Assembly: GCA_977016875.1 (NCBI GenBank)
Contig: CDRNST010000175.1
Location: 1,488,001-1,552,000, forward strand
Direction: 5' to 3'
Source: Pavona decussata
Lineage: Eukaryota
DNA: 64,000 nt
Part shown: positions 17,019-34,467 of the stretch, piece after piece
Numbering within the stretch: the stretch's first letter is position 1
How the letters are laid out: the number at the start of each line of letters is the position of its first letter
The notes under the pieces: generated by a model
Seen by the model: the letters and a program-made list of their open reading frames with translations, nothing else
Database searches by the model: none
Told to the model about the DNA's origin: nothing
Translations under genes and position numbers: made by a program

Positions 17019-17084
17019 CTCTTGCATGGATGTGCATCAATAGGGAACTTAAGCACCGACGACGAAACGAGAGGACGACGACGG

Positions 17085-17125
17085 CCGGAAGTCGAATTCT
17101 CACATTTGGGCGTACTGCGCATGTC
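17085..17125 (+). promoter_or_regulatory. Putative promoter module: ETS-type CCGGAAGT, 20-nt spacer, NRF1-like TACTGCGCATGTC
   Basis: Same motifs, spacing and distance from the terminus recur at 33255-33295 (minus) in the second element. Confidence 0.55.
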
Positions 17126-17363
17126 TTTGTTTGAGATTTCGTCGTCCACGTTGCGTCCACGACGGAATTTTTCCAGGAAAGCCGTTCTCTTGAAAACGTA
17201 AGTAGAAGTAGCGTCGTTAGGACTATGTTCAAAGGATTTTGATCTATTTTCACGAAGCTTGGTACCTGCTAAGGTTTTAGATTGCGAGTGGATCGCATTG
17301 GATGAATTTTTTTGCTTCTTTTGCAGGCATATTTCACAAGTATTTATTGAAACTCTTCTCAAT

Positions 17364-18261
17364 ATGGCCGCCTCCCTTTTGCCAGAGGAAGAAACCGAGA
17401 AAACGTAAGCTACAAACAGCTATGTATTTTGGTAGATTTTTCTTTTCGATACAGTGACAGCTTAATACATTTTTCGACCAACTTGGAACTTATTTGTTGT
17501 TTTTTATTGCATCTAGAAGCAAGTACTTCCAGTGGACGACAGATCATGATGTTATTATGTGTAGGGAAGTGCTCGTGAGCGAACCCTACAAATTCAAGCT
17601 AAGAACCCCTGAAAGAGGACAAGCCTGGGAATCCTTAGCTCAGCAGCTCAACAGTATTCATCAGCCGAAGTTCAGAGTAACCGCCAGATCCGTGCGTGAT
17701 CGGTTTTCACTGCTGTCGACAAAGTATGCACAAAAATTAAGAATGGAGGAGAGAGCTTCAGGTATCGAAGTGGAACACACAGAGCTAGAGAAACTGATAG
17801 ATGAAATCTTAGAGCGAGAGAAGGACGCAAAGAGGGAACTAGACTCAAAAGACCGTGAAAAGAAGAGTAAGGCCGACAAGGAAAAGGCTACAGCTGAACA
17901 AGTCAGGAAGCAAGCAATGGAGAGAATGGTTAAGCGAACAGGTGATGACCAGGAGAACAAACAAAGGAAGCCAAAGATCAGGCGAAGCACTGTTGATGCT
18001 ATAGATTACTTGAGAGAGAGATCAGAAAATGAGAGGGAGTATAAAAAAGAAGAATTAGAGATCAAGAAGAGAGAACTTGCTGTGCAAGCTGAAAAGCAAG
18101 ATCAAGCTCAAAAGCAACAACAGGCTATGTTTTCAGCATTAATGGCTCAAATTCAGCAGCAACAACAGCAACAGCAGAATGTGCAAGCAATGCTAGCAGC
18201 ACAACAGCAGCAGCAAACCAAGCTTCTGATGGCATTCATGGAGAATAACAAGAAACAGTGA
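17364..18261 (+). CDS. Myb/SANT-like DNA-binding accessory protein of Pangu element 1 (exons 17364-17404, 17517-18261; 261 aa)
   Basis: GT-AG phase-2 intron joins [14 protein letters not shown] to [11 protein letters not shown]...RGQAWESLA...SVRDRF...ASG, followed by a charged coiled coil and a Gln-rich tail; no stops. Confidence 0.85.
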
Positions 18262-18632
18262 ACTTGTTAAGCTTAGTTCAAGACTGTGAGTAATACTCTC
18301 TCATAAGATCAGTTTAAAAGCAATTTGCAGTTGAATTTGTTATGAACCCTCCCAGTTACTAGAGGTGTCTCTTAAGTTTTACATTTTACATTTGAATTGT
18401 TATAGAACTGAACCAGAAAAATGGTTGTTGCACGGTGTAGTGTAACCAGTGTAGAATTTAATGTTTTCATGGCTTCTAAACTTCACACAAATGTCAGCCG
18501 TACTTCCTATTGCTTATTTTGCAATTCTCTAGTGCATGCAGATTGTTGTGTTTTGAGTTTTTCATGAATAAACTGTGTTTATTATATTTGGAATGGTTGT
18601 GTTTGTGCTTTTTATTCAGTTATTAACCTTAA

Positions 18633-18833
18633 CCCTTTGAGCCCTAATTTCAAAGAACAAATTCTCCTATCTTGTCCTCATACTTTTCTTATAAAAGTAC
18701 TAGGGAAAAGTTATTAAAATACGAAAATTAACCTTGGGTGATCAGATCCTTAACTCTCATGACCTCAGGGGTTGAATAAGCATTGATATTACAAGGAGAA
18801 ATTTGATACGGATTACTGTTAGGGCTTAAAGGG
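18633..18833. mobile_element. piggyBac-type MITE inside Pangu element 1
   Basis: TTAA on both sides; TIR ccctttgagccctaa / ccctttaagccctaa (14/15). Confidence 0.85.
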
Positions 18834-19018
18834 TTAATTAAGTAAAAAAGGAGAAAGAAGATTCTTTAATGGATTTTTCAGTTCTGTTTTATTTTTACTC
18901 TCTAGTAATCAGTCAACCATCACTTCATAAGCATTTTTCTGAACTGCATGTACGTTTGGCTGCACAGCTTTCATATATAAGATATTACAAGCCACAAGTC
19001 GTTGGAACCTGTTCACTC

Positions 19019-20562
19019 CTAAGCAAAATAGTCTTCAAGTCTTGGTGGTCTGAGATCAAAATAAGTTGAAGTCAGGTTTCCATAGAAACATGTCAATGCA
19101 TTTCGAAGTATGACAGAAACCACATACATTTTCCCAACATTGTTTAAAAAGATTTTCAAATTTTTTTTGAAGTCGTTAAATTTAAAAGAGTTAATAATGT
19201 CACCAAATAGCCATTCGACCGAGCTCCTAACAGCACTCATTTTGCCATTGTATTCCTCCATTTGAGGAGTTAGAACACCATACTTGAAAGGGCCTTGAAG
19301 GTGTATCCTTAGTGGATAACCCGGGTCACCGTACACACAGAGTGGCTGGCCTGCTGGATTAAACGCAAACTGCTCCAAGTCATGAAGCAGCCCTGAGTCA
19401 GCTAGCATGCCTGCGTCATGCTTCCTTCCTTCTAAAACACACACACCAAAAAACATTATTATTAGCTAATTGATAAAATAATTTATAAATAGGAGCTGCA
19501 TTCATGTATATTTTAGTTAGGAAGGAACTGGACAAGGATTAGGGTTTGAGAGTGACTTCATGCACCACATTTTATCACCCATAGGGAGCGAAAATGTCAA
19601 CCACTTTCCTGAGGGTAGGGTGCGGGTGGGGGGCGTGGGGCTTACGTAGGGGAGTATTGGGGACTTGTGGAATGTTTGTGCCCTAGAGGTGGGAGGCTTC
19701 ATAAGATTTTTAATGGAAATAACTTAAAAAGCAACAGGAGCATGCCTTAAAGCATTGCCTCACATCTGGGTGAAGAGTGAAAGGTAAGTGAGGACCCCAC
19801 ATGACAGTTGTTTAATAAACAAAGTAACAAGTACCCTTTGTAAGACACTACCCAGAACAGTCTGTCAATATTTTGTACTTCTTAATTATTTTATAACTTA
19901 CCAATTGGACCATATAAGTTTGCTATCAAACCATTTGGTAGAGCCACGCTTTGAAACTTAAGGGCGTGAACCCGCTTGTGGCCATTGTAAAGAATTCGTT
20001 GGTGCTCTCCAGGCCGTGAAATGGGTCTAACGGTGCCATCTATGAACCCAAAACAGTTGTCCAAGGGAGCTCCCTTAGCTGTTATAGCATCAACGTAGGT
20101 CTGGAGGTTTGCAGGACTAAGAATTTCATGATTCCAGTGCAGTACCTTGTGTCCATGGGTATTGTAAATGTAGTCAAGCATTTGGTTGGTAATCATACTT
20201 AGAACTGGTACAGGTTTAGCAAATCTGTGAATCATATCGCCATACCTACAAGGGTACGACATTCGCTTGAGCAGCATGCATAGGCCTTCAATGCCGTCAC
20301 AAACGGAGCGTTGCTCACAGATTATGGTGTCTGGAATCCGTAGAACCTCTGCCAATGCTCGCACGTCTCGTTTGCGAAAACGAAACTCTGCTACACTTTC
20401 AGATTCATCGATCTCGTCAAGGTCAAAAGGTGCATAAACATCGTACGGAAAATCAGGGTCTCTCGAAGAATAAAGATCATGAAGTATAATAAATTCTTCA
20501 TCATCAATTAAGCCATCATCGTGGCTGATTGCAAGCAAATTGCGAAAGTCTTTGAACGCCAT
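19019..20562 (-). CDS. Harbinger-family (DDE_Tnp_4/HARBI1-like) transposase (exons 20562-19902, 19431-19019; 357 aa)
   Basis: MAFKDFR...FRFRKRD...GFIDGTVRPISRP...YNGHKRVHALKFQ...GPI|EGRKHDAGML...YGDPGY...RSSVEWLFG. D-D-E triad present; GT-AG phase-1 intron; spliced ORF open. Confidence 0.92.
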
Positions 20563-20629
20563 AGACAAGCCAAAACTATCGTGAGTGGAAGTGCCGTTGA
20601 CTCTCCGAAAGGTCGTCTGCTTAACTTTC

Positions 20630-20645
20630 AGTTTTCCCGCCGAAA
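20630..20645 (-). promoter_or_regulatory. E2F-type site (TTTCGGCGGGAAAA) upstream of the transposase
   Basis: Matches TTTTGGCGGGAAA at 25122-25134 in the second element, at a near-identical offset from the terminus. Confidence 0.5.
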
Positions 20646-21300
20646 ACGAAACCCTTGGTCCAGTCCTTCTCGGGTATGAAGCGTCGTCGTCGTCCAATTC
20701 GTCGTCGGTGCTTAAGTTCCCTAATACCTCACATGTTTGCTTTAATATATTTGTGCACTTGACAACATCTTGAATAACGCCTTCTGAAGCAGCTTTCAAA
20801 AGTGTTACACTTTGACTGTCCAAAGGGTGGAACTGTAGAACCAAATAATGTGGTGCCTGCTCAGTGCACAAGCCAAAGAGATGTGGGATTCCCCAGTGGT
20901 CTCCAATACCTGTAATTGCTGCTTCTTCACGAAGCACTTCTCTTTTTTCTGATTTGATGAATCCATTCCTTTTATCTCTTTGGCAACGACTCTGAATTCA
21001 TTGCGATCCAATTTATTGGGTTTTGTGCACTTTCAATAAAGCCCTATGGATTTCTTTAAAAGCAGGAGCCTCTGTTTTCGTGACTGTACTCGTTTCTCCA
21101 GAGCAAACATCGATACGTTTCCGCGGAATTTTTGCGGCCAACATGATCTCCTCTTCCAATTGACTTATCCGCTCGGACTTTAAATTCGATAAGGTTACCG
21201 AATACTTGCTTCTCGACAAAGTATTGGCCACTGGCGATGGATTGTTCGATTTGATGGGTTTCTTTTTTTTGGCTATGGTTCTAGCACTTCCCTTGCGTCT

Positions 21301-22620: not shown

Positions 22621-25200
22621 GTTGCAATAAGAAAGTTTTTCAGGTCGTAGATCCCCAAATGGCAAATAAGGTGCAGATTTGGAATAAAACTATACTACAT
22701 ATAAATTGGCTGCTCAACAAATTTTTCAACCTACTGACTGTAATTGTATATTCAGATTCTGTTTTTTTTTTTCTGACTTACCTATTTTGAGCACTAAACT
22801 TAACAAGTTGTTAGGTTCAACAATTTTTAACTGAATACTTGTTTCACCAGTACAAAAGGATGACCAGCTGAGGCAGCGGAATTCGTCAAGATAGTCATAG
22901 ACCACCATGGCATGTTTTGGAAATGTTATTGCATCTTGTATGCCAGGTTGTTGAAGTAAATATCTGATGTGCTTCTCCCCATCTGTGTATGCCGCTACGA
23001 ACTGCTCATTTTGAACAAATTTTGAGTGGACCTCTTCTTTAAGCTTGGCCTTAGTCTTCCGCAGTTCTTGTACAATGACATTCCTAATGACAGATACAAA
23101 GCAAGGAATTTCTTGTGCTTAAAAAATAACCTGTCATAAATTCAATTTTTTACTAGACTTTTCTCCCTTTTTTCTTCTTGAAAAGAACATAATCCAGTTT
23201 ATAATAAGGTTTTAATGATTTCAGAACTTGTAGTACTGTAAGTTGTAGGCGGCCATTTTCTTGATTTCTGGCAAAGGTTGAGTTTAGTGACCATCTCATG
23301 ATTAATTTTCGGTTTAAAAGGAAGTTCTGTTTGCAGTTCTTAGTTTGGTGTTTTATGTTCACATTGTTTTTGGTTTTCCTTGTCTTGGTAAAAATCATCA
23401 CTTGCTTCTTCATAAGAAGCAGATAGAGTATTTCTAACTTGTACATGTAAGGTTAATAACAGTTGTTGAAAAGGCAAAATGCCAGCGTGGTTTTTTTTTT
23501 TTTTGCATAAGTTAAAAAAATATTTGAGTAATTTGATTATTTTAGTAGTATTTTGTACCAATATGTGCTCATGCATTAAGGAAACAGTTATTATTTTTAT
23601 TTGTTATAATTATTTTATTTATTTATCATACCTGGGAAGAATAGGATTAAGACCAGTTTTCTCCGCCAGTTTGTTTCCCCAATGACCCCTCAAAATTGAA
23701 TTTATACTGGTTCTGGCCAGTGCTGAAGGAGGAAATAATGCCCACGTCAAAGTCGAAAAAGGCTTCGTGATGCTTTTTTACAAATGGTGGCATAAATGTG
23801 TTCTTGACAACTCTACCATCACAACAGTCTAGCATTGCCTCATGCAAGCTTTTCATTTGAAATTACTTCCGGTCACTTCTGTCGTCCACAAATTGCAGGA
23901 ATCGCTGGTCAGGTGTACACATTTTTTGCCTCCAGGCTTTTTTGCAGAGTCCGAGTCAAGGGGCCTTATGGCAGAAGAATGTCCAGAAATGGTGATGTCA
24001 CAAAAAAGGGATGGGAAAGTCCAGTGTAAACTTTTCCTTAATTCATTCAATTCGTCCTAAGCAGCCTCCCTGCCGATCTCACGCGAAACAAGAGGTACAG
24101 ATAACCTTGGCCATTCGGGGTAGGGCAAATACAACCAGTTCCTGGTCGGTCAATTGGCTGGTAAACAGTTCCCGAATCCTGGCACCTCTGTGGTAAGGAC
24201 TCAAAGTTTACGTTAAAAAAATACTTACTGCTTCTTTGCTGTTGACAACAGGCTAAGGGCGGTGATCAGGTAGAAGGAGTAATGTCTTGATAAATTTCCC
24301 TTGGACGCAAATGAATTTTGGCAGGTTTCAAAAGTCACTTTAGCCACTTTTCTTTCCGGAGAAAACATCGTAAACTAATTTAACGGATTTAAAGGCCAAA
24401 ACATCAACAACCATTGTAGCCAATTGACATACAAACACTTTTCAGAATTGTAGAGAAAAGCAATCTTTGGGCTTTCTATTTATTTAGTATGGAGAAATCC
24501 GCAGTTTTCGAGACCTATCGGCAGCGCGCTTGCCAAACAGGCTTTTTCGCTGTGCCTTTTTTTTTTTTAACGATGTGGGACATTAATCATTAATGGAAGC
24601 TCGGTAGGAGTGAAACACTTTCCAGAATGGCAGGGAAAAGTAATCTATAGGGCTTTATTTCTTTCTATTAAGTTTGGAGAAATCCGCAGTTTTCGAGACC
24701 TATCGAGTGGCCATATGCAATTAAAAAATCGACGAGTTCGTTATTTAGTCCATAATGAAGTGTCATTTGCTAAAGACGTATGAAAACCAGTTTTGACTGC
24801 CGCGCGGACTGCGGGCTCAATCCCCGTATGGCAGGAGGCACTTCAATTTGATCATAATGCATCCATCTTACTTGTACTCTCTGCTGCTTCTCTGTTTTCC
24901 GCTTCTTGTTTGAACAGCTGTTGTCACTACTGCCCTGCCTCATTCGGTTCAGGAGACCAGATAGCCGGTTGACTGTTCGCAATGAAAATGTAGTAGGTGG
25001 TGATCTCGCCAAGGCCAATCCTTCTTCACTATGGCCACTTATTAGGGACCTTAAGCAACTCACGACGACGGCCCAGTGGACGCCGGCCGTGAGTGTGGGA
25101 AACTAGGTCGAGGTCGACGTCTTTTGGCGGGAAACACAAGATTAAGCAAACAAGAGGACGACGGCATTTTTTTCTGAGGTCTTTGCCACTTCAGTTAGAT

Positions 25201-26778
25201 ATGGCATCCCTGAGAGATACTCGAGAAGCTTTATTGTTTGCATACTCTGAAGATTGGTTGGATGACGTAGAATTTCTCGTTTTGAATGAGCTCAACACTT
25301 CTAAAAACCTCGACTTTCCCTATGATTTGTACGACCAGTTTGATTTTGACGATATCGACGAAGCCGAGTGTATTGCCGAATTTCGTTTTGAGAAGCGACA
25401 CATTCTGCTACTAGAAGAGGTGCTACAGATCCCGCCTTTAATGAAATGCAACCAGAGATCGGTTTTCACCGGAACGGAAGGACTCTGTATGCTTCTTAAA
25501 AGGCTTGCTTACCCTTGTAGATATTCAGACCTCATTCATCGTTTTGGCAGACCAGTTCCTGTCCTAAGCATGATTACCAATGAAGTCATAGACCACATAT
25601 ACGGGACCCACCATCACAAGATAACTAACTGGAATGATGATATTCTGAACCCTATTGCCTTGCAAACGTACGCAGATGCAATTTCAGCAAAAGGAGCACC
25701 TTTAGCAAACTGCTTTGGATTTGTAGATGGGACAGTGAGACCAATTTCTAAACCCGGAGAACGCCAACGAGTGATGTATAACGGTCACAAGAGAGTTCAT
25801 GGCATCATAATTTTTTTTTTCTTTTAAGGTATGTTTTTGCGAAATTGCAGTAAGTCCATCTCAAGGAGAAATAAAAAATTCCTTGACATTCAAAGGCTTT
25901 CTAACAGCATTTCTTTCAAAGTCATCTCCATCAGTTTTCACCTCATCAACCCATTTTTATTTGCCTGCAGAGAAGCAAGGTTTCTTTGAAAACAGAGGGA
26001 CAATAACATTGATTTTCCTGAAACGGTTTTATGTTTGCTTGTACCTTTAGATAGTACTTGTGAGAATCCCAGGTATATAGTTAGTGTCCCAAATGCAATA
26101 TGAGAACAAAGTTCCTGTCCCCTAGCTGGATTTTATGTGGGAAGAGGAAGGGGGGGGGGGGGGGGGGTTAAGCCTACATGCAGCAGAAAATTCATTGGGA
26201 GAAATAGCACTACCTGATAACCTCCCCAGTCAGTGGATCCCAATGGCCTATGGGGGTTTGAACACACCCACTGCACCCTCCTACTGATAGGCAACATCAT
26301 TACATTTGGAAAAGCATTAATTAAGTGCAAATATTTTGTTCTTCCATGTCCATATCCACTGTGAAGAAGGAAGAAAGCATGATGCAAGCATGTTGACAGA
26401 ATCTGGGCTTTTGAGGCAACTACAACAGAATGCACTGTCACCTGCTGGCCAGCCTATGTGTATCTATGGGGACCCTGCATACCCACTGAGGGTACATTTG
26501 CAGGGTCCATTCAAGAATGCCCACTTAACTCCTCAGATGCAGCAGTTTAATAAGTGTATGAGTGAAGTTAGAGTTTCTGTTGAATGGCTTTTTAATGACA
26601 TCATAAATTATTTTAAGTACATGATTTTAAAAAAAATCTCAAGGTTGGTTTAAGTAGTGTAGGGAAAATGTACTTTGTATCAGCACTTCTTCGCAATGCT
26701 CTGACATGCCTATATGGCAATTCGACATCCAAGTTTTTTGATGTTCAACCTCCAAGGCTGGAAGACTATTTTGCATAA
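25201..26778 (+). pseudogene. Harbinger-family transposase of Pangu element 2, disabled
   Basis: MASLRDTRE...GFVDGTVRPISKP...HKRVHGI, then loss of the end of exon 1 and its donor near 25806. Exon 2 from 26367 (EGRKHDASML...GDPAYP...SVEWLF) has a frameshift near 26620 and ends PRLEDYFA*. Confidence 0.9.
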
Positions 26779-29616
26779 ATTTGAAGACTGAATTCCTGTA
26801 ATGTAAAGTATGTTTAATCAACAACCACTTTCTTCCAACAAGTAACAAGCAAGTAACCAAACTGTAAAGAACAGACCATTAATTTGTTGAGTTAGTAAAC
26901 AGATGAAAAACATCCAAAGTCCCTTGTCATACATCTTCTCTTCCATCTGTCATATAACTGAATATCTTGTTTACAAAAAACACAATTTAAAAACATCTTG
27001 ATTTTGATTTTAAAAAATGTTTGATTCTTGCTTTATAAGAAAACAAACAAGTGCAAAAACCAGATACCCCTAGTAAGTCATAACTTGCAATAAAAAAACT
27101 GTAACTGAACAAATCTCAACCTGCTGAATTTGATCCAGGTGTACTTTTTCTACTTTTTAGCAAACTTTTCCACAATTGCTAACATAGTTTGGTTTTGCTG
27201 CTGACTTTGTTGCATAAAAGCTGCTAACATATCTTGCATCTGCTGTCGTTGATTGACCTGTGGCAGTTGCATCTGTTGCAAAATATTGTTTTGTTGATCT
27301 ACAATTTTCTGCTGCTCAGATCTCCTTTGAGTCAGTTCTTCTTGCTTTATCTTCGTGTCGTTTTCCAATTTCTCTCTCATAAAGTCAAGAGTGTCTGAAC
27401 CACTACGTCTTGCTTTCTTCTTGTGCCCTGAAGCTGTCTCTCCAGTGGCTTCTTTGCGCTTCTTGCTTTGTCCAAGTTTTTCCATAGCTTGAAATTTCAT
27501 TTCTTCTGCATTTGCTTTGTCCTGCAATTCACTCTTTTTACCTGATTCCTCAATTAGATCTAGCTCTACTTGAGCTGCTTTTTCTTTCTCAGCTATCTCC
27601 TCTAAAGCAGCATCAAGTTCGGAAAGTTCTGGCACTTCAATTCCTGAGGCTCTTTCTTCTTCTCTTATTTTTAGTTTAAAGTTCCTCAGCAAAATCTTTG
27701 CTCGGTCTCTGACAGACTTCTGTGAAACTCGGAAACGTGGTGCATGAATAGCATTCAGATGAGTTGCAATAAGGTCCCATGCCTGTCCACTCTCCCTACT
27801 TCTGTTCTTAAATTTATAAGGTTCAACTGCCAACATCTCTCTGGCTAAGAGTACATCGTGTTCTTTTGACCATTTAAATGCTGGCAAGTTCCTAGAATTA
27901 CAGAGAAGAAAAAATTACCTATAATATTTTAACAAATTTAAATGATTTCCAAGGTATTGATTGTTTGAATAGAGTATACCAACAGACTTCAAATCAAGTA
28001 GTCCTCGTGTAAAAGTTTTGGCATAGGATGGGGTACTCTAGGATAAAAGGGGAACATTTTTGGAAAAGCAAATGAATTTACTATATAAATAGGAAATGTT
28101 TCCCCCAAAAAAACAACAACACCAAACAAGCAATGAAAAAGGAAACAAACATCAAATTTGGGGCTTTTTGCTACTAACTGAGTCAACTAATCTCAAATTC
28201 CATCCATTCTCCTTCCCAAACAAAAAAATATGTACAATTATCTCTGTCAACAGCCACAGCTACAATGGGCTACGTTCTGTAAACAAACAGATCACTGTGT
28301 TGCATATCATGGCTCACATTTCAGGGCTTCAATTCCCTTAAAATATAGATAATTTTGTTACTACGTGTTAAAATGATTTGCAATTGAATTATTGAGTCTT
28401 CGTTCGGAGGGGCTTGCAACGATTATCTTCGGGGATCCAAATTAAAGCTAACAGAAATGATATTTACAACCTTCACGACAGCAATAATTCTGCTTAGCAA
28501 GTTCAAAAGGACACATAATCAAACAATTAAATTGGAGAAATTAGTTCTGAGGGATATTCGACAGGTTAAACAGTGGACGGATTGTAGCATGTCAAATTGA
28601 AGGGAAAAAATCTCGCAACACAAATCACCAACTATGTAAAAAGTTTCTCGGAAGTATTCGTGCGCTTAATTTCTTAGAACCTGCCATACCGAAAATACAA
28701 CTTTCATTAAGAGTTTGCACTGAAAAATCCAATTCTAGCTTGAAAGAAAGGGCGCTTTCGCAGCCAAATTTCTTCTAAACGTAATTCAAAATAAAACTCC
28801 AAGAAAAGCCCTTACTTACGTAGCTCTTTCAGATGTTTGTTCACAGGAAGGTATAAAAATATATTATCGGACACTTTTTACCTCTTCGGCTCTATTGAAG
28901 CTCGCGATGGAGAAACAGCCGATTTATTCTTCCTCTAAAATAGTAATAGAGTACTCTTTATAGTCCCAGAAGATAATTGCGTAAAAAGCGTCACATTTCC
29001 CACAAAACTTACTCACAGAGGCTCGATTGGATTGATCGATTATCGGACATGCAAATCTATTATCGGACATGCGAATCTATTATCGGACATATGATACAAC
29101 TATTGTTTGGTGCCCAAATTTGGGAAGTGTGAGGGTCAGAACATCATGTAGGCCTACGTATAATGTCCCGGGACATAACCATGTGTAATATACATAACTT
29201 TACATGACTTATAGATAACTTTACATGACGTACTGACCAGATCAGACAGATCATCAATAATATTTCTATGATATATGTAAGTTTGCTACGTTTATTCTCA
29301 CGTGACAAGGTATTCAAGAACAAATATGTGAGCAAAGAGTTTCTTCTTGTTTATGATACAGACTGAGGGAAAAAGGGGTACTGTATACAATTCTGTTAGT
29401 TTAATATTTCGGAATGCTATTGCTTATGATGACCCAAAACATAAGCTTGCATCAACAACAAAGTTTCTTTGTAACTTAAAGCTACCTGTCAACTGTTCGC
29501 AGTTCAATGTCACTTCTTCTTAAATGATCTGCATGAGGGCCTAATTTTAGTGTAGAAGAACGTAAATTATTTCTTTAATCTAGGAGCAACAAGAGCTTAC
29601 AAATTTTTTTGGTTTT

Positions 29617-32115
29617 TTAATAGTCATTGTGGCTTGGGAAGCCCCGAACTTCACACTCCTCGCAGGTGTAGTCCACGAGTGTGTTGAAAGAATCAAGCAC
29701 TGGCAGATCCGTGCATTGAAAGTGGAACCATCCCCCGCAGTAATCACACTCTACCCATGGGTTTTCTTCTTCGGTGTAGTATTCTTTGCCGCACTTCGCA
29801 CAATGGTACTTTTCCTTTTCCTCTGCGGTCGCCGTCTTCTTTCTCTTTGCACGTGAACCATTCTTCCCCTTCTTTCCCCTATTATTTTTTTGGGCTTCTT
29901 TTGCTTCTTCCTTTCTTTTCTTTTCTTCTGCCTTTGCCTTCATTTTCTCTTTCCTTTCCTCTGCTTTCTTTTTCTTCTCCGCTGCCGTTCTCTCTCTCTC
30001 TTTTCTCTTTTCTTCTTTTTCCTTCTTTTCTTTTTCCTTTCTTTCGTTTTCTGACTGTAACGCAGCTACAAACAATTGGCCTGTTATACAGCTGTTGCTA
30101 GGATTCAGCGCGTTGTTCCCCCGTTTTCTGTTTGCGGTAGTTTTTCTTCTCAGATCTAACATTATGCTGCACAAATCTCCGTCGATATGAACAGATCCAA
30201 ATGGTGTGGAGATGGTGTAAGGCGATGGTTCCGCGCTGGAAGGAGGAGAAGGGAACACTCGAACTTCATCACTTTGGGACATGTTCACGGGCGAAGTGGC
30301 AGCTGGTGCTAATGGTGTGGAGGTGCTGTAAGGCGATGGTTCGCTGGAAGGAGGAGAAGGGAACACGGGGACTTCAGCACTTTGCGACACGTTCACGGGC
30401 GAGGTGGCAGCTGGTGGTACACTCAACATTGTCGGCAGTAGAGGACAGCCCATTTGTAGACAGTCACAAAAGCCGAATCCATCGCAAGTACAGTGGCAGG
30501 CGGACTGGCACGGGCAATTTGCGTTAACCTTGTCTCCTCCGATATCTCTGAACAACTCCCGCCATGTGTCGTACTGGTGGTCGCCGTCTATGTCATAACC
30601 GTTCTGAAATCGCCGTCTGAATCTCTCTCTCTCCGTCCTCCCAATTCTCTTCTCTAACGATGTCAGTGTTTCATAGGCTGCTGATATGCCAGGAGAATTG
30701 GATTGTGTACTTGGCGTACTTGGCCCACTGGGTGTCGATGAGAGAAATGGGTCCCCTTGAAGAAGCGATGGGCGTGGTGGAGTAATGGGCACATCAACCT
30801 CATGCATTAGTGGGAGTTCCATGCAAGGGGAAGCAGGCTCGGTAGCAAAACCATCTTGTCCCACTGTATCATCCTCAGTTGGAGGAGAGCTTTCACTAGT
30901 GGGTGGATCTGAATTCCTGATGGCGTCTCGGCTGGATGAACCAATGGTTGGCGCTAGCTTGGAGTAGTCAAACTGGGTCGGATCAAACGGATAGATACCA
31001 GCCCGTCTAAATCCTCCCCGGATGACTTGTGGAGTATTACTTGAGTGCCAGGCAACGTTAAAGATCTTAGCGAAATTACGCTGATTGACCACCATTGAAG
31101 CAATATGGTTGAAAGCTGCGCACGCCCTCACCCATCCCCGTTTCAGCGGGCCAAACAAGGACAAGTCCAGAGGCTGGAGAAGATGAGATGAATGAGCAGG
31201 CAAGCAGAAGACAAGGATTTTGTTTCTGATTGCTGTTTCGATTACGTCTTGCGTGACGTTCGCTTTGTGGCCATCAACCAAAAGCAAGACAGGCCGTTCC
31301 TCGGGAATATGTTTCAGAAACAGTTCATTGAACCACTTTAAATAGAGGTCCTTATCTATCCAGCCAGACTTCTGTGCTGTAAATAAGGTGTTTGTCGGTG
31401 CGCCCTCTTGAACCCCATTTGGTACGCGCCCACTTTGACTCTTATAGATCAACATGGGAGGTAGGCTATTCCCTGCAGCAGATGAGCAGGCCAGCACTGT
31501 CACTTTTTCATGCTGCCCTTTGGAAACGCGTGGAATGTGTTTTGCACCTCTTGCTGCGGCCACCGTCTTATTTATACTGTCAAACTCAAAGCCGCTCTCG
31601 TCACAGTTGAAAATCAAGTGCGGTTTCTCCAATAATGACCCATAAGGATTATCTGTGAGGGTTTCATAAAGGCGCTCGTAGAATTGCTCTATCGTTGTCC
31701 TGTTTACTAACGTGCGGACGATTCCAAAGTTTTGCGTCGCTCGCATAGAAATTTCAGGATTTCGCTTTAGAAAGTGTCGCCACCACATCTCTGAAAGGCA
31801 CCCCTCTACCTTTTTTCCTCGCTTAACGGCGATCTGCGTGGCCATGTACAAAATTATTTCTTTACTTTTACCATAGCCTTGCTTACTGACGTCAATCAGA
31901 TAACTGGCAAGTTTCTTTTCGTCCTCCGCGCTTAACATTCGTTCTGGGCCACTTAGAGCTCCGTGTTCAGTTCGCCCACTTATTCTATCCCCAAGAGTTG
32001 ATTTAGGGACATTCCAATCTGCAGCCGCTTTTCTTACGGAATCTCCATTTCTTACGGCCTCCATGGCAGCAACCATGTTTTCTTCCGTCCAAGTTTTTCT
32101 TTTTTTTGGTGGCAT
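29617..32115 (-). CDS. pogo-family transposase, 832 aa from MPPKKRKTW: HTH-psq, CENP-B HTH, DDE_1, Cys cluster, K/E coil, C-terminal PHD finger
   Basis: Uninterrupted ORF; FNCDESG, LLVDGH, QPLD (35 residues between the last two Asp); CAKC..WVECDYCGGWFHFQC..YTCEEC. Confidence 0.92.
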   Translation of the reverse strand: MPPKKRKTWTEENMVAAMEAVRNGDSVRKAAADWNVPKSTLGDRISGRTEHGALSGPERMLSAEDEKKLASYLIDVSKQGYGKSKEIILYMATQIAVKRGKKVEGCLSEMWWRHFLKRNPEISMRATQNFGIVRTLVNRTTIEQFYERLYETLTDNPYGSLLEKPHLIFNCDESGFEFDSINKTVAAARGAKHIPRVSKGQHEKVTVLACSSAAGNSLPPMLIYKSQSGRVPNGVQEGAPTNTLFTAQKSGWIDKDLYLKWFNELFLKHIPEERPVLLLVDGHKANVTQDVIETAIRNKILVFCLPAHSSHLLQPLDLSLFGPLKRGWVRACAAFNHIASMVVNQRNFAKIFNVAWHSSNTPQVIRGGFRRAGIYPFDPTQFDYSKLAPTIGSSSRDAIRNSDPPTSESSPPTEDDTVGQDGFATEPASPCMELPLMHEVDVPITPPRPSLLQGDPFLSSTPSGPSTPSTQSNSPGISAAYETLTSLEKRIGRTERERFRRRFQNGYDIDGDHQYDTWRELFRDIGGDKVNANCPCQSACHCTCDGFGFCDCLQMGCPLLPTMLSVPPAATSPVNVSQSAEVPVFPSPPSSEPSPYSTSTPLAPAATSPVNMSQSDEVRVFPSPPSSAEPSPYTISTPFGSVHIDGDLCSIMLDLRRKTTANRKRGNNALNPSNSCITGQLFVAALQSENERKEKEKKEKEEKRKERERTAAEKKKKAEERKEKMKAKAEEKKRKEEAKEAQKNNRGKKGKNGSRAKRKKTATAEEKEKYHCAKCGKEYYTEEENPWVECDYCGGWFHFQCTDLPVLDSFNTLVDYTCEECEVRGFPSHNDY
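30198..30418 (-). repeat. In-frame tandem duplication (~36-37 codons x2) within the pogo transposase
   Basis: PAATSPVNVSQSAEVPVFPSPPSSEPSPYSTSTP / PAATSPVNMSQSDEVRVFPSPPSSAEPSPYTISTP. Confidence 0.9.
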
Positions 32116-34467
32116 TTTGACCCTAAGGATGTGGATGATTATCTTAGAAATGCTCTTAAGTACATTTCCTTTACTTCTTTTACTCACCGATTGACCCACC
32201 CAGGAACCCCACCCTATTCCTGGTAGTGCCCCACCCCTTTTCTTACAGATCCACTTCCTTTCACCGAATAGTATGTTTTTTAAAATTGTAAAATTACTAC
32301 ATTTTACCACTAGAACGTCAGACATAGTATTGTAAACCGTTTCCTGGAATATCCCCTTTTGTCAATGAAAGACATGGGTCGGTATTAAAAAAAACTCAGA
32401 AAATCACGTAAAATTATAAATTGAGGAGCTAATTTCTCATTTCCCCTTGTTAACTGATCAAGGACCACATAAATAAGCCAAAATATAGCATTTTAAGCTT
32501 AACTTACCTGGATATTTGGAAATCCTGGACAAAATTCCCGCCAGACACATTGCGCACGCAAATCCTGTTTCGGTATGAAAGCTGGCCGTCCGATAATAGA
32601 TCGCAGGCGTATACAGGCAAAAACACCTTTAACCAGCGGTTGATCGCAAAAAACAGCCCCAATGGACTCATGGGAAAGAAAATGGAGGACAAGGTTGCGA
32701 TCGGCGAGTTTTCAGGGCAATCTCAGCAGTTTTGCGCCCGTTATTGAAATTTTTTTTTTTGTCGAGGGAAATTTGTTGGGAAAATCAAGCGCCATGGTTG
32801 TTGAAGGTAAGAAAACTAATTTCATTTTATATTTCCGCGGATTTACGACAGACAACTTGGTACACGCGGCGATTACATGCCATCTAGTCAAAGTGTTGGT
32901 GTTTCATAACCTTTTTTTTATTATTTTAGTGGAAAACAAAGTTTTTCCGTTTTTGTCCGATAATGTGTGGCGTCCGATAATATATATTTATACCTGAAGC
33001 CATCTTTGATTCCAGCTAGTTCACTGAAAACGAGAAAGTTCGTAAATGAATAAACAGCACATTCTCGTCAAATAGCACCACAAAATTTTTCTTCGATCTT
33101 AGAAAGCCCAAAACAACACTCACATGTGATTTGTTTCCTTAAAATGAGCAGGGAAAGAGAAAATAAGGAAATAAATGCTCACCTTCTGACGACGCCTTCA
33201 AAACCATGTGTCGCCCGACGTCGAGAGCTGAACGACGACTCAAGTTTTATCGCTGACATGCGCGGTAGCTGCAAATATTGCACTTTTACTTCCGGTCGCC
33301 CAATTTGGCGTCGTCGTCGTGAGTTGCGTAATGTCCCTATTATGTTGGCTGGCAGACGACGTTATTCACTAGAATTGGAACATCGCAGTCCTCCTGCACA
33401 GTTTCTACTTTGGCACGTTTCGTAGCTTAGTCCTTCTCCAAAGAATCACGATGCTCCATTGATTGACTGTCCTTTAGAGCTGCTCTCTCGTTGGAGGTTC
33501 CCAACAACCGTCCAGATGGAGGGGAGCTTATAGTCGTACTGTGTTTGCTCTCAAAAGCAGGTGTAAGTAAATTAGCCTCATCATCTCAGTCGTTGACATA
33601 GTGAAATTCAGGCTCTCTCTTCTTTACCTTTTAGGTCTTGACAGGTTCATTGAAATAATAGCTTGGATATTGCAAGCTCAATTGAAGCCTTCAAAGCTAC
33701 AAAGCACGTGGTTCAACTTAAACGAAAACACAGAATGAAAATTCATGAACCTTTCGCTTCCTCTACCCCAAAATATACTCCACTTTATAAACATCTGTTC
33801 TTGATGTTCTTTTGACCGGTGGACACAAAGCTTTTTGCTCGTCTACAGTGGAAAAGCCTTGCAACCTTTTGTAAAAACCGTTCGCGTGACGGGACGAAGT
33901 GTTGAAAAAATTCAGGGTCAACCGCGTTTAGTCTGTGAGGAGACAAATACCGAAAGTCTAAAATTAGCGAATCACGGTTTGAGTAGTACAATAGGTTAGG
34001 TTGTTTAGACGTCTGTTTAGACTAGAACCCAGACTCCTTGTTGTGGTTGTCACAAAGGAATGGAATATTCTGTGAACCACCTGGAAACTTTGTCTTATTG
34101 TTGATCCTCAGCCACTACTTGGAGGTTTTTCAGGACATTTGTATGGGTTGGAGTACAAACACTATACACGGCATGGATTTCTTTACCACTAACTCCACCC
34201 CAGAATGAATCCATTCCTTCTTTTAGTTCAGTGATACATGTAAAGGGCTTGTAAATACGTTCTGTCTCAGATACATGTAGAAGAATTTTCTTGGTGTTTG
34301 AGGTACTTGGACAGCTGTTACACCGTAATCACAGAGAATCTGTATCACATCTTCAGCTGAAAAAGGTTGCACACCAAGCAGGGCTTGTTGAAGGATTTTA
34401 CGTTCCTTTTCATGAAAGGATTGGAATAAAAAATTACTGTGACACCTGTCCGACCACGGCTTGCAGT

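Follow-up and report, generated by a model that had tools for sequence, protein, structure and literature searches.

Pangu transposons of the coral Pavona decussata carry, at one end only, a short module in which the ETS-type motif CCGGAAGT and the NRF1-type half palindrome TGCGCATG are held at a fixed distance from each other upstream of the gene ORF2, and this arrangement recurs across about 20 diverged families. The conserved module itself is solid, and the promoter mechanism proposed for it is putative. Based on sequence comparisons, we favor, with a probability of roughly 0.6, a model in which RNA polymerase II would transcribe ORF2 of coral Pangu elements from a strictly spaced promoter that lacks a TATA box and has the two motifs as its upstream part.

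Results

The window, by which we mean the whole 64,000-nucleotide stretch of P. decussata DNA that was analyzed, holds an intact two-gene Pangu-type transposon of 3,681 bp, element A (17042–20722), which is bounded by a pair of terminal inverted repeats (TIRs) opening with AGGGAACTTAAGCA and has an AAT target-site duplication (TSD) at either end. The two genes point inward, ORF2 from the left end (plus strand) and the transposase gene from the right end (minus strand), one transposase exon (19022–19456, minus) matching PF13359, DDE_Tnp_4, at 38.7 bits in a Pfam search. On the ORF2 side, the TIR AGGGAACTTAAGCACCGACGACGAA (17042–17066, plus) is followed by the ETS-type motif (17085–17092, plus), 43 nt inside the terminus, and by TGCGCATG (17116–17123, plus), which includes an ATG at 17121 and whose GCGCATG begins 24 nt beyond the ETS motif, 75 nt inward from the terminus. 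Exon 1 ends at 17197 with a strong 5′ splice site, GTAAGTA (17198–17204, plus), 74 nt past TGCGCATG; the position of this donor is kept across families, and the homologous donor is used in the spliced RNA contigs of a related family. Exon 2 (17327–17404, plus) carries the ORF2 ATG at 17364 in the context AATATGGCC and has a homologous exon in RNA contigs L058 and L059 and in the gene model P0013. Exon 3 (17514–18261, plus) encodes the ORF2 body, made up of a helical DNA-binding-type N-terminal domain and a long coiled coil. An E2F-like sequence, GGCGGGAAA (20633–20641, minus), is located ~81 nt inside the transposase-side terminus, outside the module. Family A comprises seven copies (L001–L007) that are 99–100% identical over their first 359 nt and retain intact ORF2 frames of 267 aa. 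Thus, to judge from these copies, the family may recently have been, or may still be, active in this coral.

The window contains a second, diverged Pangu family, element B (25044–33338), in the opposite orientation to A, with an ATT/ATT TSD and an AGGGA terminus at 33338. Its ETS-type motif CCGGAAGT (33288–33295, minus) again lies 43 nt inside the terminus, and 24 nt beyond that motif comes its GCGCATG (33257–33263, minus), with C in place of T before it. The 5′ splice site GTGAGCA (33176–33182, minus) ends exon 1 at 33183, 77 nt after the ATG of the motif, the same distance as in A. Exon 2 is interrupted by a nested pogo-like element (28849–32995, minus) that carries a 902-aa ORF (29617–32325) and is bounded by 24-nt TIRs (28849–28872 and 32972–32995) reading AGGTATAAA; the insertion point is nine bases past the ORF2 ATG. 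The 5′ part of the exon (32996–33023, minus) holds that ATG (33003–33001) in the context AAGATGGCT, and the 3′ part (28820–28846, minus) is in frame with exon 3 (27150–27891, minus; the ORF2 body, 42% identical to that of A) only once the insert and one copy of its apparent 2-bp TSD, TC, are removed. Because its exon 2 is split in this way, B cannot make ORF2. The sequence previously taken as the end of B's exon 2 is in fact the junction with the nested element, and a candidate exon 2 of 30 nt, ending in CAG before GTATAAAT and with its ATG out of frame, was rejected for this reason. Computed removal of the insert and one TC copy places the exon-2 ATG in frame and leaves the ATG of the upstream motif out of frame. 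Two further features of the pogo-like element are recorded here: the frame of B is restored only on the assumption of a 2-bp TC duplication, as opposed to the usual TA, and the 902-aa ORF has a PHD-like cysteine cluster at its C-terminus.

The preliminary description of this DNA had proposed that A and B share a position-locked module embedded in otherwise diverged sequence, and the comparison bears this out. In both elements CCGGAAGT begins exactly 43 nt inside the ORF2-side terminus, AGGGA at 17042 and 33338, and is followed after exactly 20 nt by the 13-mer TAC(T/C)GCGCATGTC, which reads TACTGCGCATGTC at 17113–17125 (plus) and TACCGCGCATGTC at 33255–33267 (minus). These are the only two matches to the 13-mer pattern in the whole window, against 0.04 expected. 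A and B agree at 8/8 positions of the ETS 8-mer and at 12/13 of the 13-mer, and the surroundings mostly differ, as was claimed, with 9/20 identical positions in the spacer, 5/18 at positions 26–43, and 31/76 at positions 85–160. The window has two other occurrences of CCGGAAGT, both of which were dismissed as chance matches: that at 23865 is without promoter-like context, and that at 55896 lies inside an SH3-like coding exon.

Pattern counts over the 602-Mb coral genome (1,180 contigs), with the backward pattern as control, reveal how strictly the two motifs are spaced. With 21–24 nt between CCGGAAGT and YGCGCATG there are 110 matches against a single backward control, compared with nine matches (two controls) for the 21 gap lengths from 0 to 20 nt taken together and seven (three controls) for the 21 gap lengths from 25 to 45 nt. 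Counts at shorter and longer gaps are thus so much lower that the ETS-to-GCGCATG distance must be regarded as locked. A gap of exactly 24 nt before GCGCATG gives 87 exact matches, and 139 when up to one mismatch is allowed, the setting in which the control for this gap was counted (nine matches). The 24-nt arrangement is, by these counts, nearly confined to the transposons in this genome, and the fixed spacing is not in use elsewhere in the host, so that copying of a host promoter does not by itself account for the module.

Unrelated spacer sequences divide the 110 matches into ~18–20 families, and one representative per spacer type was compared, 17 of them being Pangu-type ends. Two landmarks that are independent of the search pattern keep their places: the terminus lies 41–44 nt upstream of the ETS motif in 17 families and 65 nt upstream of it in one further family, N2, and among the family representatives a GTRAGT donor follows 101–114 nt, mostly 113–114 nt, beyond the ETS motif. 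In 12 representatives an ORF2 homologue, 36–63% identical to that of A, lies downstream of the module. Ungapped pairwise comparison of 14 families gives an identity of 34% for the spacer and 30% for the 59 nt past the second motif, close to random. Some families are closely related to one another (H, L, and O; E, I, and Q). The flanking subterminal repeats likewise vary by family (GACGACG, GGACGCG, and CTACGGC) and the two motifs are invariant, a difference that would fit repeats read by co-evolving proteins of the element and motifs read by proteins of the host. One pattern match, L033, was rejected as a transposon end; it is a chance match in a retroelement gag-like region with zinc-knuckle coding sequence. 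We also observed two deletion derivatives of family C, L018 and L019 (contigs C213 and C382), with breakpoints just past the ETS motif and inside TGCGCATG, respectively, so internal deletions can remove part of the module.

Samples chosen without reference to the motifs lead to the same arrangement. A search of this genome with the ORF2 protein yielded 311 candidate loci, of which 150 were scored; by coordinates, an exact copy of the module precedes ORF2 in matching orientation at no fewer than 59 of the 150, and a copy with one mismatch at two more, these being lower bounds because at the other 89 loci the module is not among the matches listed. Homologues of ORF2 bear names from Montipora, Acropora, and Desmophyllum. 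In other public assemblies, seven informative loci were picked by ORF2 protein alone. Five of these (L054, L055, L056, L057, and L060) carry the module with no mismatches, the terminus 41–44 nt upstream, and the donor in place. L052 is a decayed copy that reads CCGAAAGT and TGCATAAT, and L053, which represents one external family (one of the seven loci), has no module; the module is therefore not universal among Pangu families. L051, from Desmophyllum, was left out as uninformative, being truncated and situated behind a retroelement. The module is also present in the family closely related to A that is known from RNA contigs. Collectively, the motifs are present at the same spacing in about 20 diverged families from several assemblies.

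All of these families are homologous, some of them closely so, and the matches could in principle be functionless leftovers of common ancestry. We regard such passive inheritance as highly improbable. Outside the TIRs the surroundings have drifted to 30–34% identity, but 15–16 motif positions and the gap between them are unchanged in some 20 families and in five of the seven motif-blind loci; at ~35% identity per site, 16 identical positions would be expected by chance with a probability of ~5e-8 for one unrelated pair; and gaps outside 21–24 nt occur at background level. Recurrence across about 20 diverged families, at one end only, instead upholds the earlier proposal that selection keeps a position-locked module, composed of an ETS motif and GCGCATG, on the ORF2 side.

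Evidence on the gene structure comes from RNA. Two Logan contigs from two SRA runs, L058 and L059, derive from a family whose ORF2 is 79% identical to that of A and are spliced exactly as predicted, with an exon 1 ending in GAAAAC, an exon 2 containing ATGGCT, and an exon 3 that opens the conserved domain. Hence, ORF2 of this A-related family is expressed and its exon 1 is used. Both contigs continue past the terminus into different host flanks, for which reason they cannot place the transcription start, and part of the transcription may be read-through. L058 also carries a 518-aa ORF without a Pfam family (L058:3–1556, minus), arranged head-to-head with the ORF2 side (L058:1638 onward) and with its start codon ~80 nt outside the terminus; this arrangement may reflect divergent transcription from a shared region or insertion beside a promoter.

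The ATG within TGCGCATG raises the question of whether the motifs act at the level of RNA or translation. On transcripts beginning at the ETS motif or upstream of it, the ATG could open an upstream ORF or serve as an alternative start codon, and a part of the conservation would then be due to translational control or to an N-terminal extension of ORF2. Several observations are in keeping with this. The motif is present inside RNA contigs; the distance from the ATG to the donor is exactly 77 nt in eight families; in A and its expressed relative L059 the ATG shares its frame with that of exon 2 and no stop separates the two; and in 10 of 18 families (11 of 19 with L060) the frame of the motif's ATG stays open as far as the donor, compared with 4–5 of 18 for the other two frames, which hints that some transcripts include the ATG. 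The frames are, however, not independent between families, which share subterminal repeats at equal offsets. Moreover, the frame closes early in E, R, L054, and L055 although their ORF2 bodies are intact, in B it is not in phase and meets a stop within exon 2, no residues are conserved among the exon-1 peptides, and the invariant TGCGC before the ATG together with a non-G at +4 is unlike a start-codon context. Wherever exon 2 can be read, it contains a conserved Met-Ala(-Ser/Thr) start, which is also the one used in the RefSeq-type model P0013. With this start in exon 2 and the motif's ATG out of frame or closed in several families, we infer that exon 1 is non-coding. In B, the upstream ORF of an mRNA that included the motif's ATG would be out of frame and would overlap the real start, and in several families such an mRNA would have short upstream ORFs; such a harmful upstream ATG favors a transcription start downstream of TGCGCATG. 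On balance we consider action at the RNA level unlikely, and the promoter reading remains the preferred one.

A further alternative concerns the proteins of the transposon itself. The motifs fall inside the first 85 nt, where they are surrounded by subterminal repeats that element proteins probably bind, they are spaced with an exactness that is unusual for pairs of independent host factors, and they are kept in short non-autonomous derivatives present in many copies, C (1,018 bp), D (809 bp), and K2 (1,529 bp). They might accordingly serve as cis sites for these proteins, for example as an asymmetric-end signal for a complex of transposase and ORF2. The two ends of the elements nevertheless differ in a way that is difficult to reconcile with this idea. 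None of the 14 transposase-side termini that could be paired with ORF2-side ends has the ETS motif, yet a signal for transposition itself would be expected at both ends. At 10 of these 14 termini there is instead an exact E2F-like sequence, GCGGGAAA or GGCGGGAAA, at +78 to +93 (A, at 20633–20641 on the minus strand, and C, E, I, J, P, Q, R, L055, and L057), and three more have variants of it: S, G (in reverse orientation), and L054 (GGCGCGAAA). A different host-type motif is fixed before each gene, an arrangement that fits gene-specific promoters. The motifs on the ORF2 side have also stayed invariant while ORF2 proteins have diverged to 36–46% identity and the obvious subterminal repeats have co-diverged; they match well-known host motifs for which the host encodes the factors; and their retention in short derivatives is explained by breakpoints that lie further inside. 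For these reasons a role as binding sites for the element's own proteins appears quite unlikely compared with the promoter model. As to the surroundings of the E2F-like site, we note that a block resembling GGACTGGG(T/C)CGAG precedes it and that a second copy of CTTAAGCA follows.

The host possesses candidate readers for both motifs of the ORF2 side. CCGGAAGT fits the high-affinity ETS consensus, (A)CCGGAAGT with its GGAA core, and is exact in every family representative and in five of the seven motif-blind loci; a profile search found 26 ETS-domain matches in the genome. About 14 of them fall within 180 kb on contig C23 (965805–1145318), a clustering that suggests tandem expansion of one ETS gene type. 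There is one clear NRF1 orthologue, a 511-aa open frame on contig C76 that matches PF10491, Nrf1_DNA-bind, at 387.5 bits. The second motif had been described as NRF1-like, and this label is tentative: TGCGCATG covers 8 of the 12 positions of the palindrome YGCGCAYGCGCR, which NRF1 recognizes as a homodimer, and these eight are invariant, but agreement at 9–10 positions is confined to some families. K, K2, and L054 reach TGCGCATGCG, with 10 positions, and most families continue with TC, AC, or CN. Single good NRF1 half-sites can work. Nrf-1 and ETS promoter motifs are older than eumetazoans (PMC4773876). A host-like promoter at L049:390–500 (contig C120, near 2277660), found as a pattern match that is no transposon end, holds within 110 nt two tandem copies of CCGGAAGT, a reverse ETS core, CGCGCGCATGC, and the YY1-type GCCGCCATTTTG, and combines two CCGGAAGT with GCGCATGC and GCCATTTTG; a near-identical string of motifs occurs on contig C228.

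A third host motif had been suggested in the preliminary description, in which the start codons of both elements were placed in a YY1-like AA(T/G)ATGGC context. The context is present at the exon-2 ATGs of A (17364) and B (33003, minus), but its interpretation as a YY1 site fails. AAnATGGC, as part of exon 2, is separated from the upstream module by at least 230 nt and one intron, occurs at the start-codon exon of only ~5 of 18 families, and is absent in L059, the closest relative of A; it is accounted for by a Kozak context combined with the conserved Met-Ala start. That YY1 sites resemble the Kozak context has been pointed out before (PMC4773876). The assignment of ORF2 to Myb/SANT proteins is tentative, with a resemblance at the level of fold only. 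Searches with ORF2 retrieved neither a Pfam family at E ≤ 0.01 nor a match among PDB sequences; the N-terminal helical domain of its AlphaFold model (pLDDT 84) resembles the DNA-binding domain of Sap1, with a target-normalised TM-score of 0.70–0.73 (E 0.015), and that of Zeste, with a target-normalised TM-score of 0.64–0.67. On the strength of this model it is plausible that ORF2 is a DNA-binding partner of the transposase.

Discussion

Taken together, these features can be assembled into a model of the ORF2 promoter. Reading inward from the terminus, the TIR and the family-specific subterminal repeats would be followed by CCGGAAGT at +42 to +45, then by a 24-nt spacer of unconstrained sequence (~31 nt from center to center, or three helical turns), and then by TGCGCATG at about +75. 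A protein of the host ETS family would bind CCGGAAGT, and the NRF1 orthologue, or another reader of TGCGCA, would bind the second motif. Transcription would start downstream of TGCGCATG, roughly between +85 and +130, and ~74 nt past TGCGCATG the strong 5′ splice site would end a non-coding exon 1, with the ORF2 ATG in exon 2. The nearby 5′ splice site may also give direction to motifs that are otherwise bidirectional. Each of the two motifs includes a CpG, and methylated copies would be expected to be closed. In human promoters, NRF1 sites precede the start, whose position is set by the most 3′ factor (PMC11269187); a start downstream of TGCGCATG would agree with this position rule. Similarly, the U1/5′ splice-site motif has been identified as a directional promoter element (10.1101/2023.06.27.546584).

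The elements fit the published definition of the Pangu group. Pangu, a member of the PHIS superfamily, is described as having 3-bp 5′-ANT-3′ TSDs, TIRs of 11–40 bp that start with AG or GG, a length of ~3.5 kb, and two ORFs, one of them a PIF/Harbinger-type DDE transposase (PMC4482050). The coral elements show ANT TSDs (AAT/AAT in A and ATT/ATT in B, and also in C, D, G, I, P, Q [TTT], S, L054, L055, and L057), termini that begin AGGGA or AGAGA with TIRs of ~25–34 nt, and two ORFs, of which one includes a DDE_Tnp_4 transposase and the other, ORF2, is without a Pfam family. A second ORF without known motif is common to the published elements and to ours. The published account, whose Pangu families come from Crassostrea, Hydra, Nematostella, insects, and fungi among others, lists one anthozoan and no scleractinian, does not treat promoters, and does not contain the regulatory module (PMC4482050). 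The preliminary description had regarded such a module as undescribed for PHIS elements, and we too found none for PHIS or Pangu elements in the searchable literature. Two possible sources were set aside: a coral MITE paper concerns piggyBac elements, and a coral ATAC preprint contains no motif data.

Three known systems offer points of comparison. Transposable elements with internal promoters built from host factor sites are known, and in the 5′ UTR of human L1 a YY1 site positions initiation. Like these, the putative Pangu promoter would place sites for ubiquitous host factors just inside one end, at a fixed distance from the terminus. It differs in that it is carried by a two-gene cut-and-paste DNA transposon, apparently with two promoter types, one per end, in that the sites are ETS and TGCGCATG rather than YY1, and in that about 20 families keep a single spacing to the nucleotide. 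Certain pairs of core-promoter elements, TATA with Inr and Inr with DPE, are strictly spaced. The present module shares with them two short motifs at a distance fixed within 1–2 nt and free sequence between, but its motifs resemble activator sites and not elements contacted by TFIID. Finally, vertebrate CpG-island-type housekeeping promoters with ETS/GABP and NRF1 sites resemble it in their core motifs, the absence of a TATA box, a nearby 5′ splice site, and position-dependent factor effects (PMC11269187; 10.1101/2023.06.27.546584). These promoters, however, have no single fixed ETS-to-NRF1 distance, and the second motif of the module is a partial NRF1 site. Thus, elements with promoters made of host sites were known; a nucleotide-locked combination of ETS and TGCGCATG across some 20 families of DNA transposons, accompanied by another module at the partner gene, has no description in the literature searched.

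A broader and more tentative reading joins the two ends. Under it, a nucleotide-fixed grammar, consisting of the ETS motif, 24 nt, TGCGCATG, ~74 nt, and a 5′ splice site, would have been kept through the whole radiation of the family, paired with an E2F-type module at the transposase gene, and a single host complex would read both motifs of the ORF2 side. We hold this to be possible but doubtful. If it is true, the DNA-binding partner would be made broadly and the transposase would be gated to dividing cells, and the elements would disclose a cnidarian core-promoter syntax so far undescribed from host genes.

The promoters of cut-and-paste DNA transposons are poorly known, and the module suggests how a two-component transposon splits regulation between its two genes. 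Furthermore, about 20 natural replicates that keep 16 bases and one distance amid randomised sequence would amount to a ready-made mutational scan of a putative cnidarian promoter, in animals whose promoter syntax is almost unexplored and in which compact constitutive promoters would help transgenesis.
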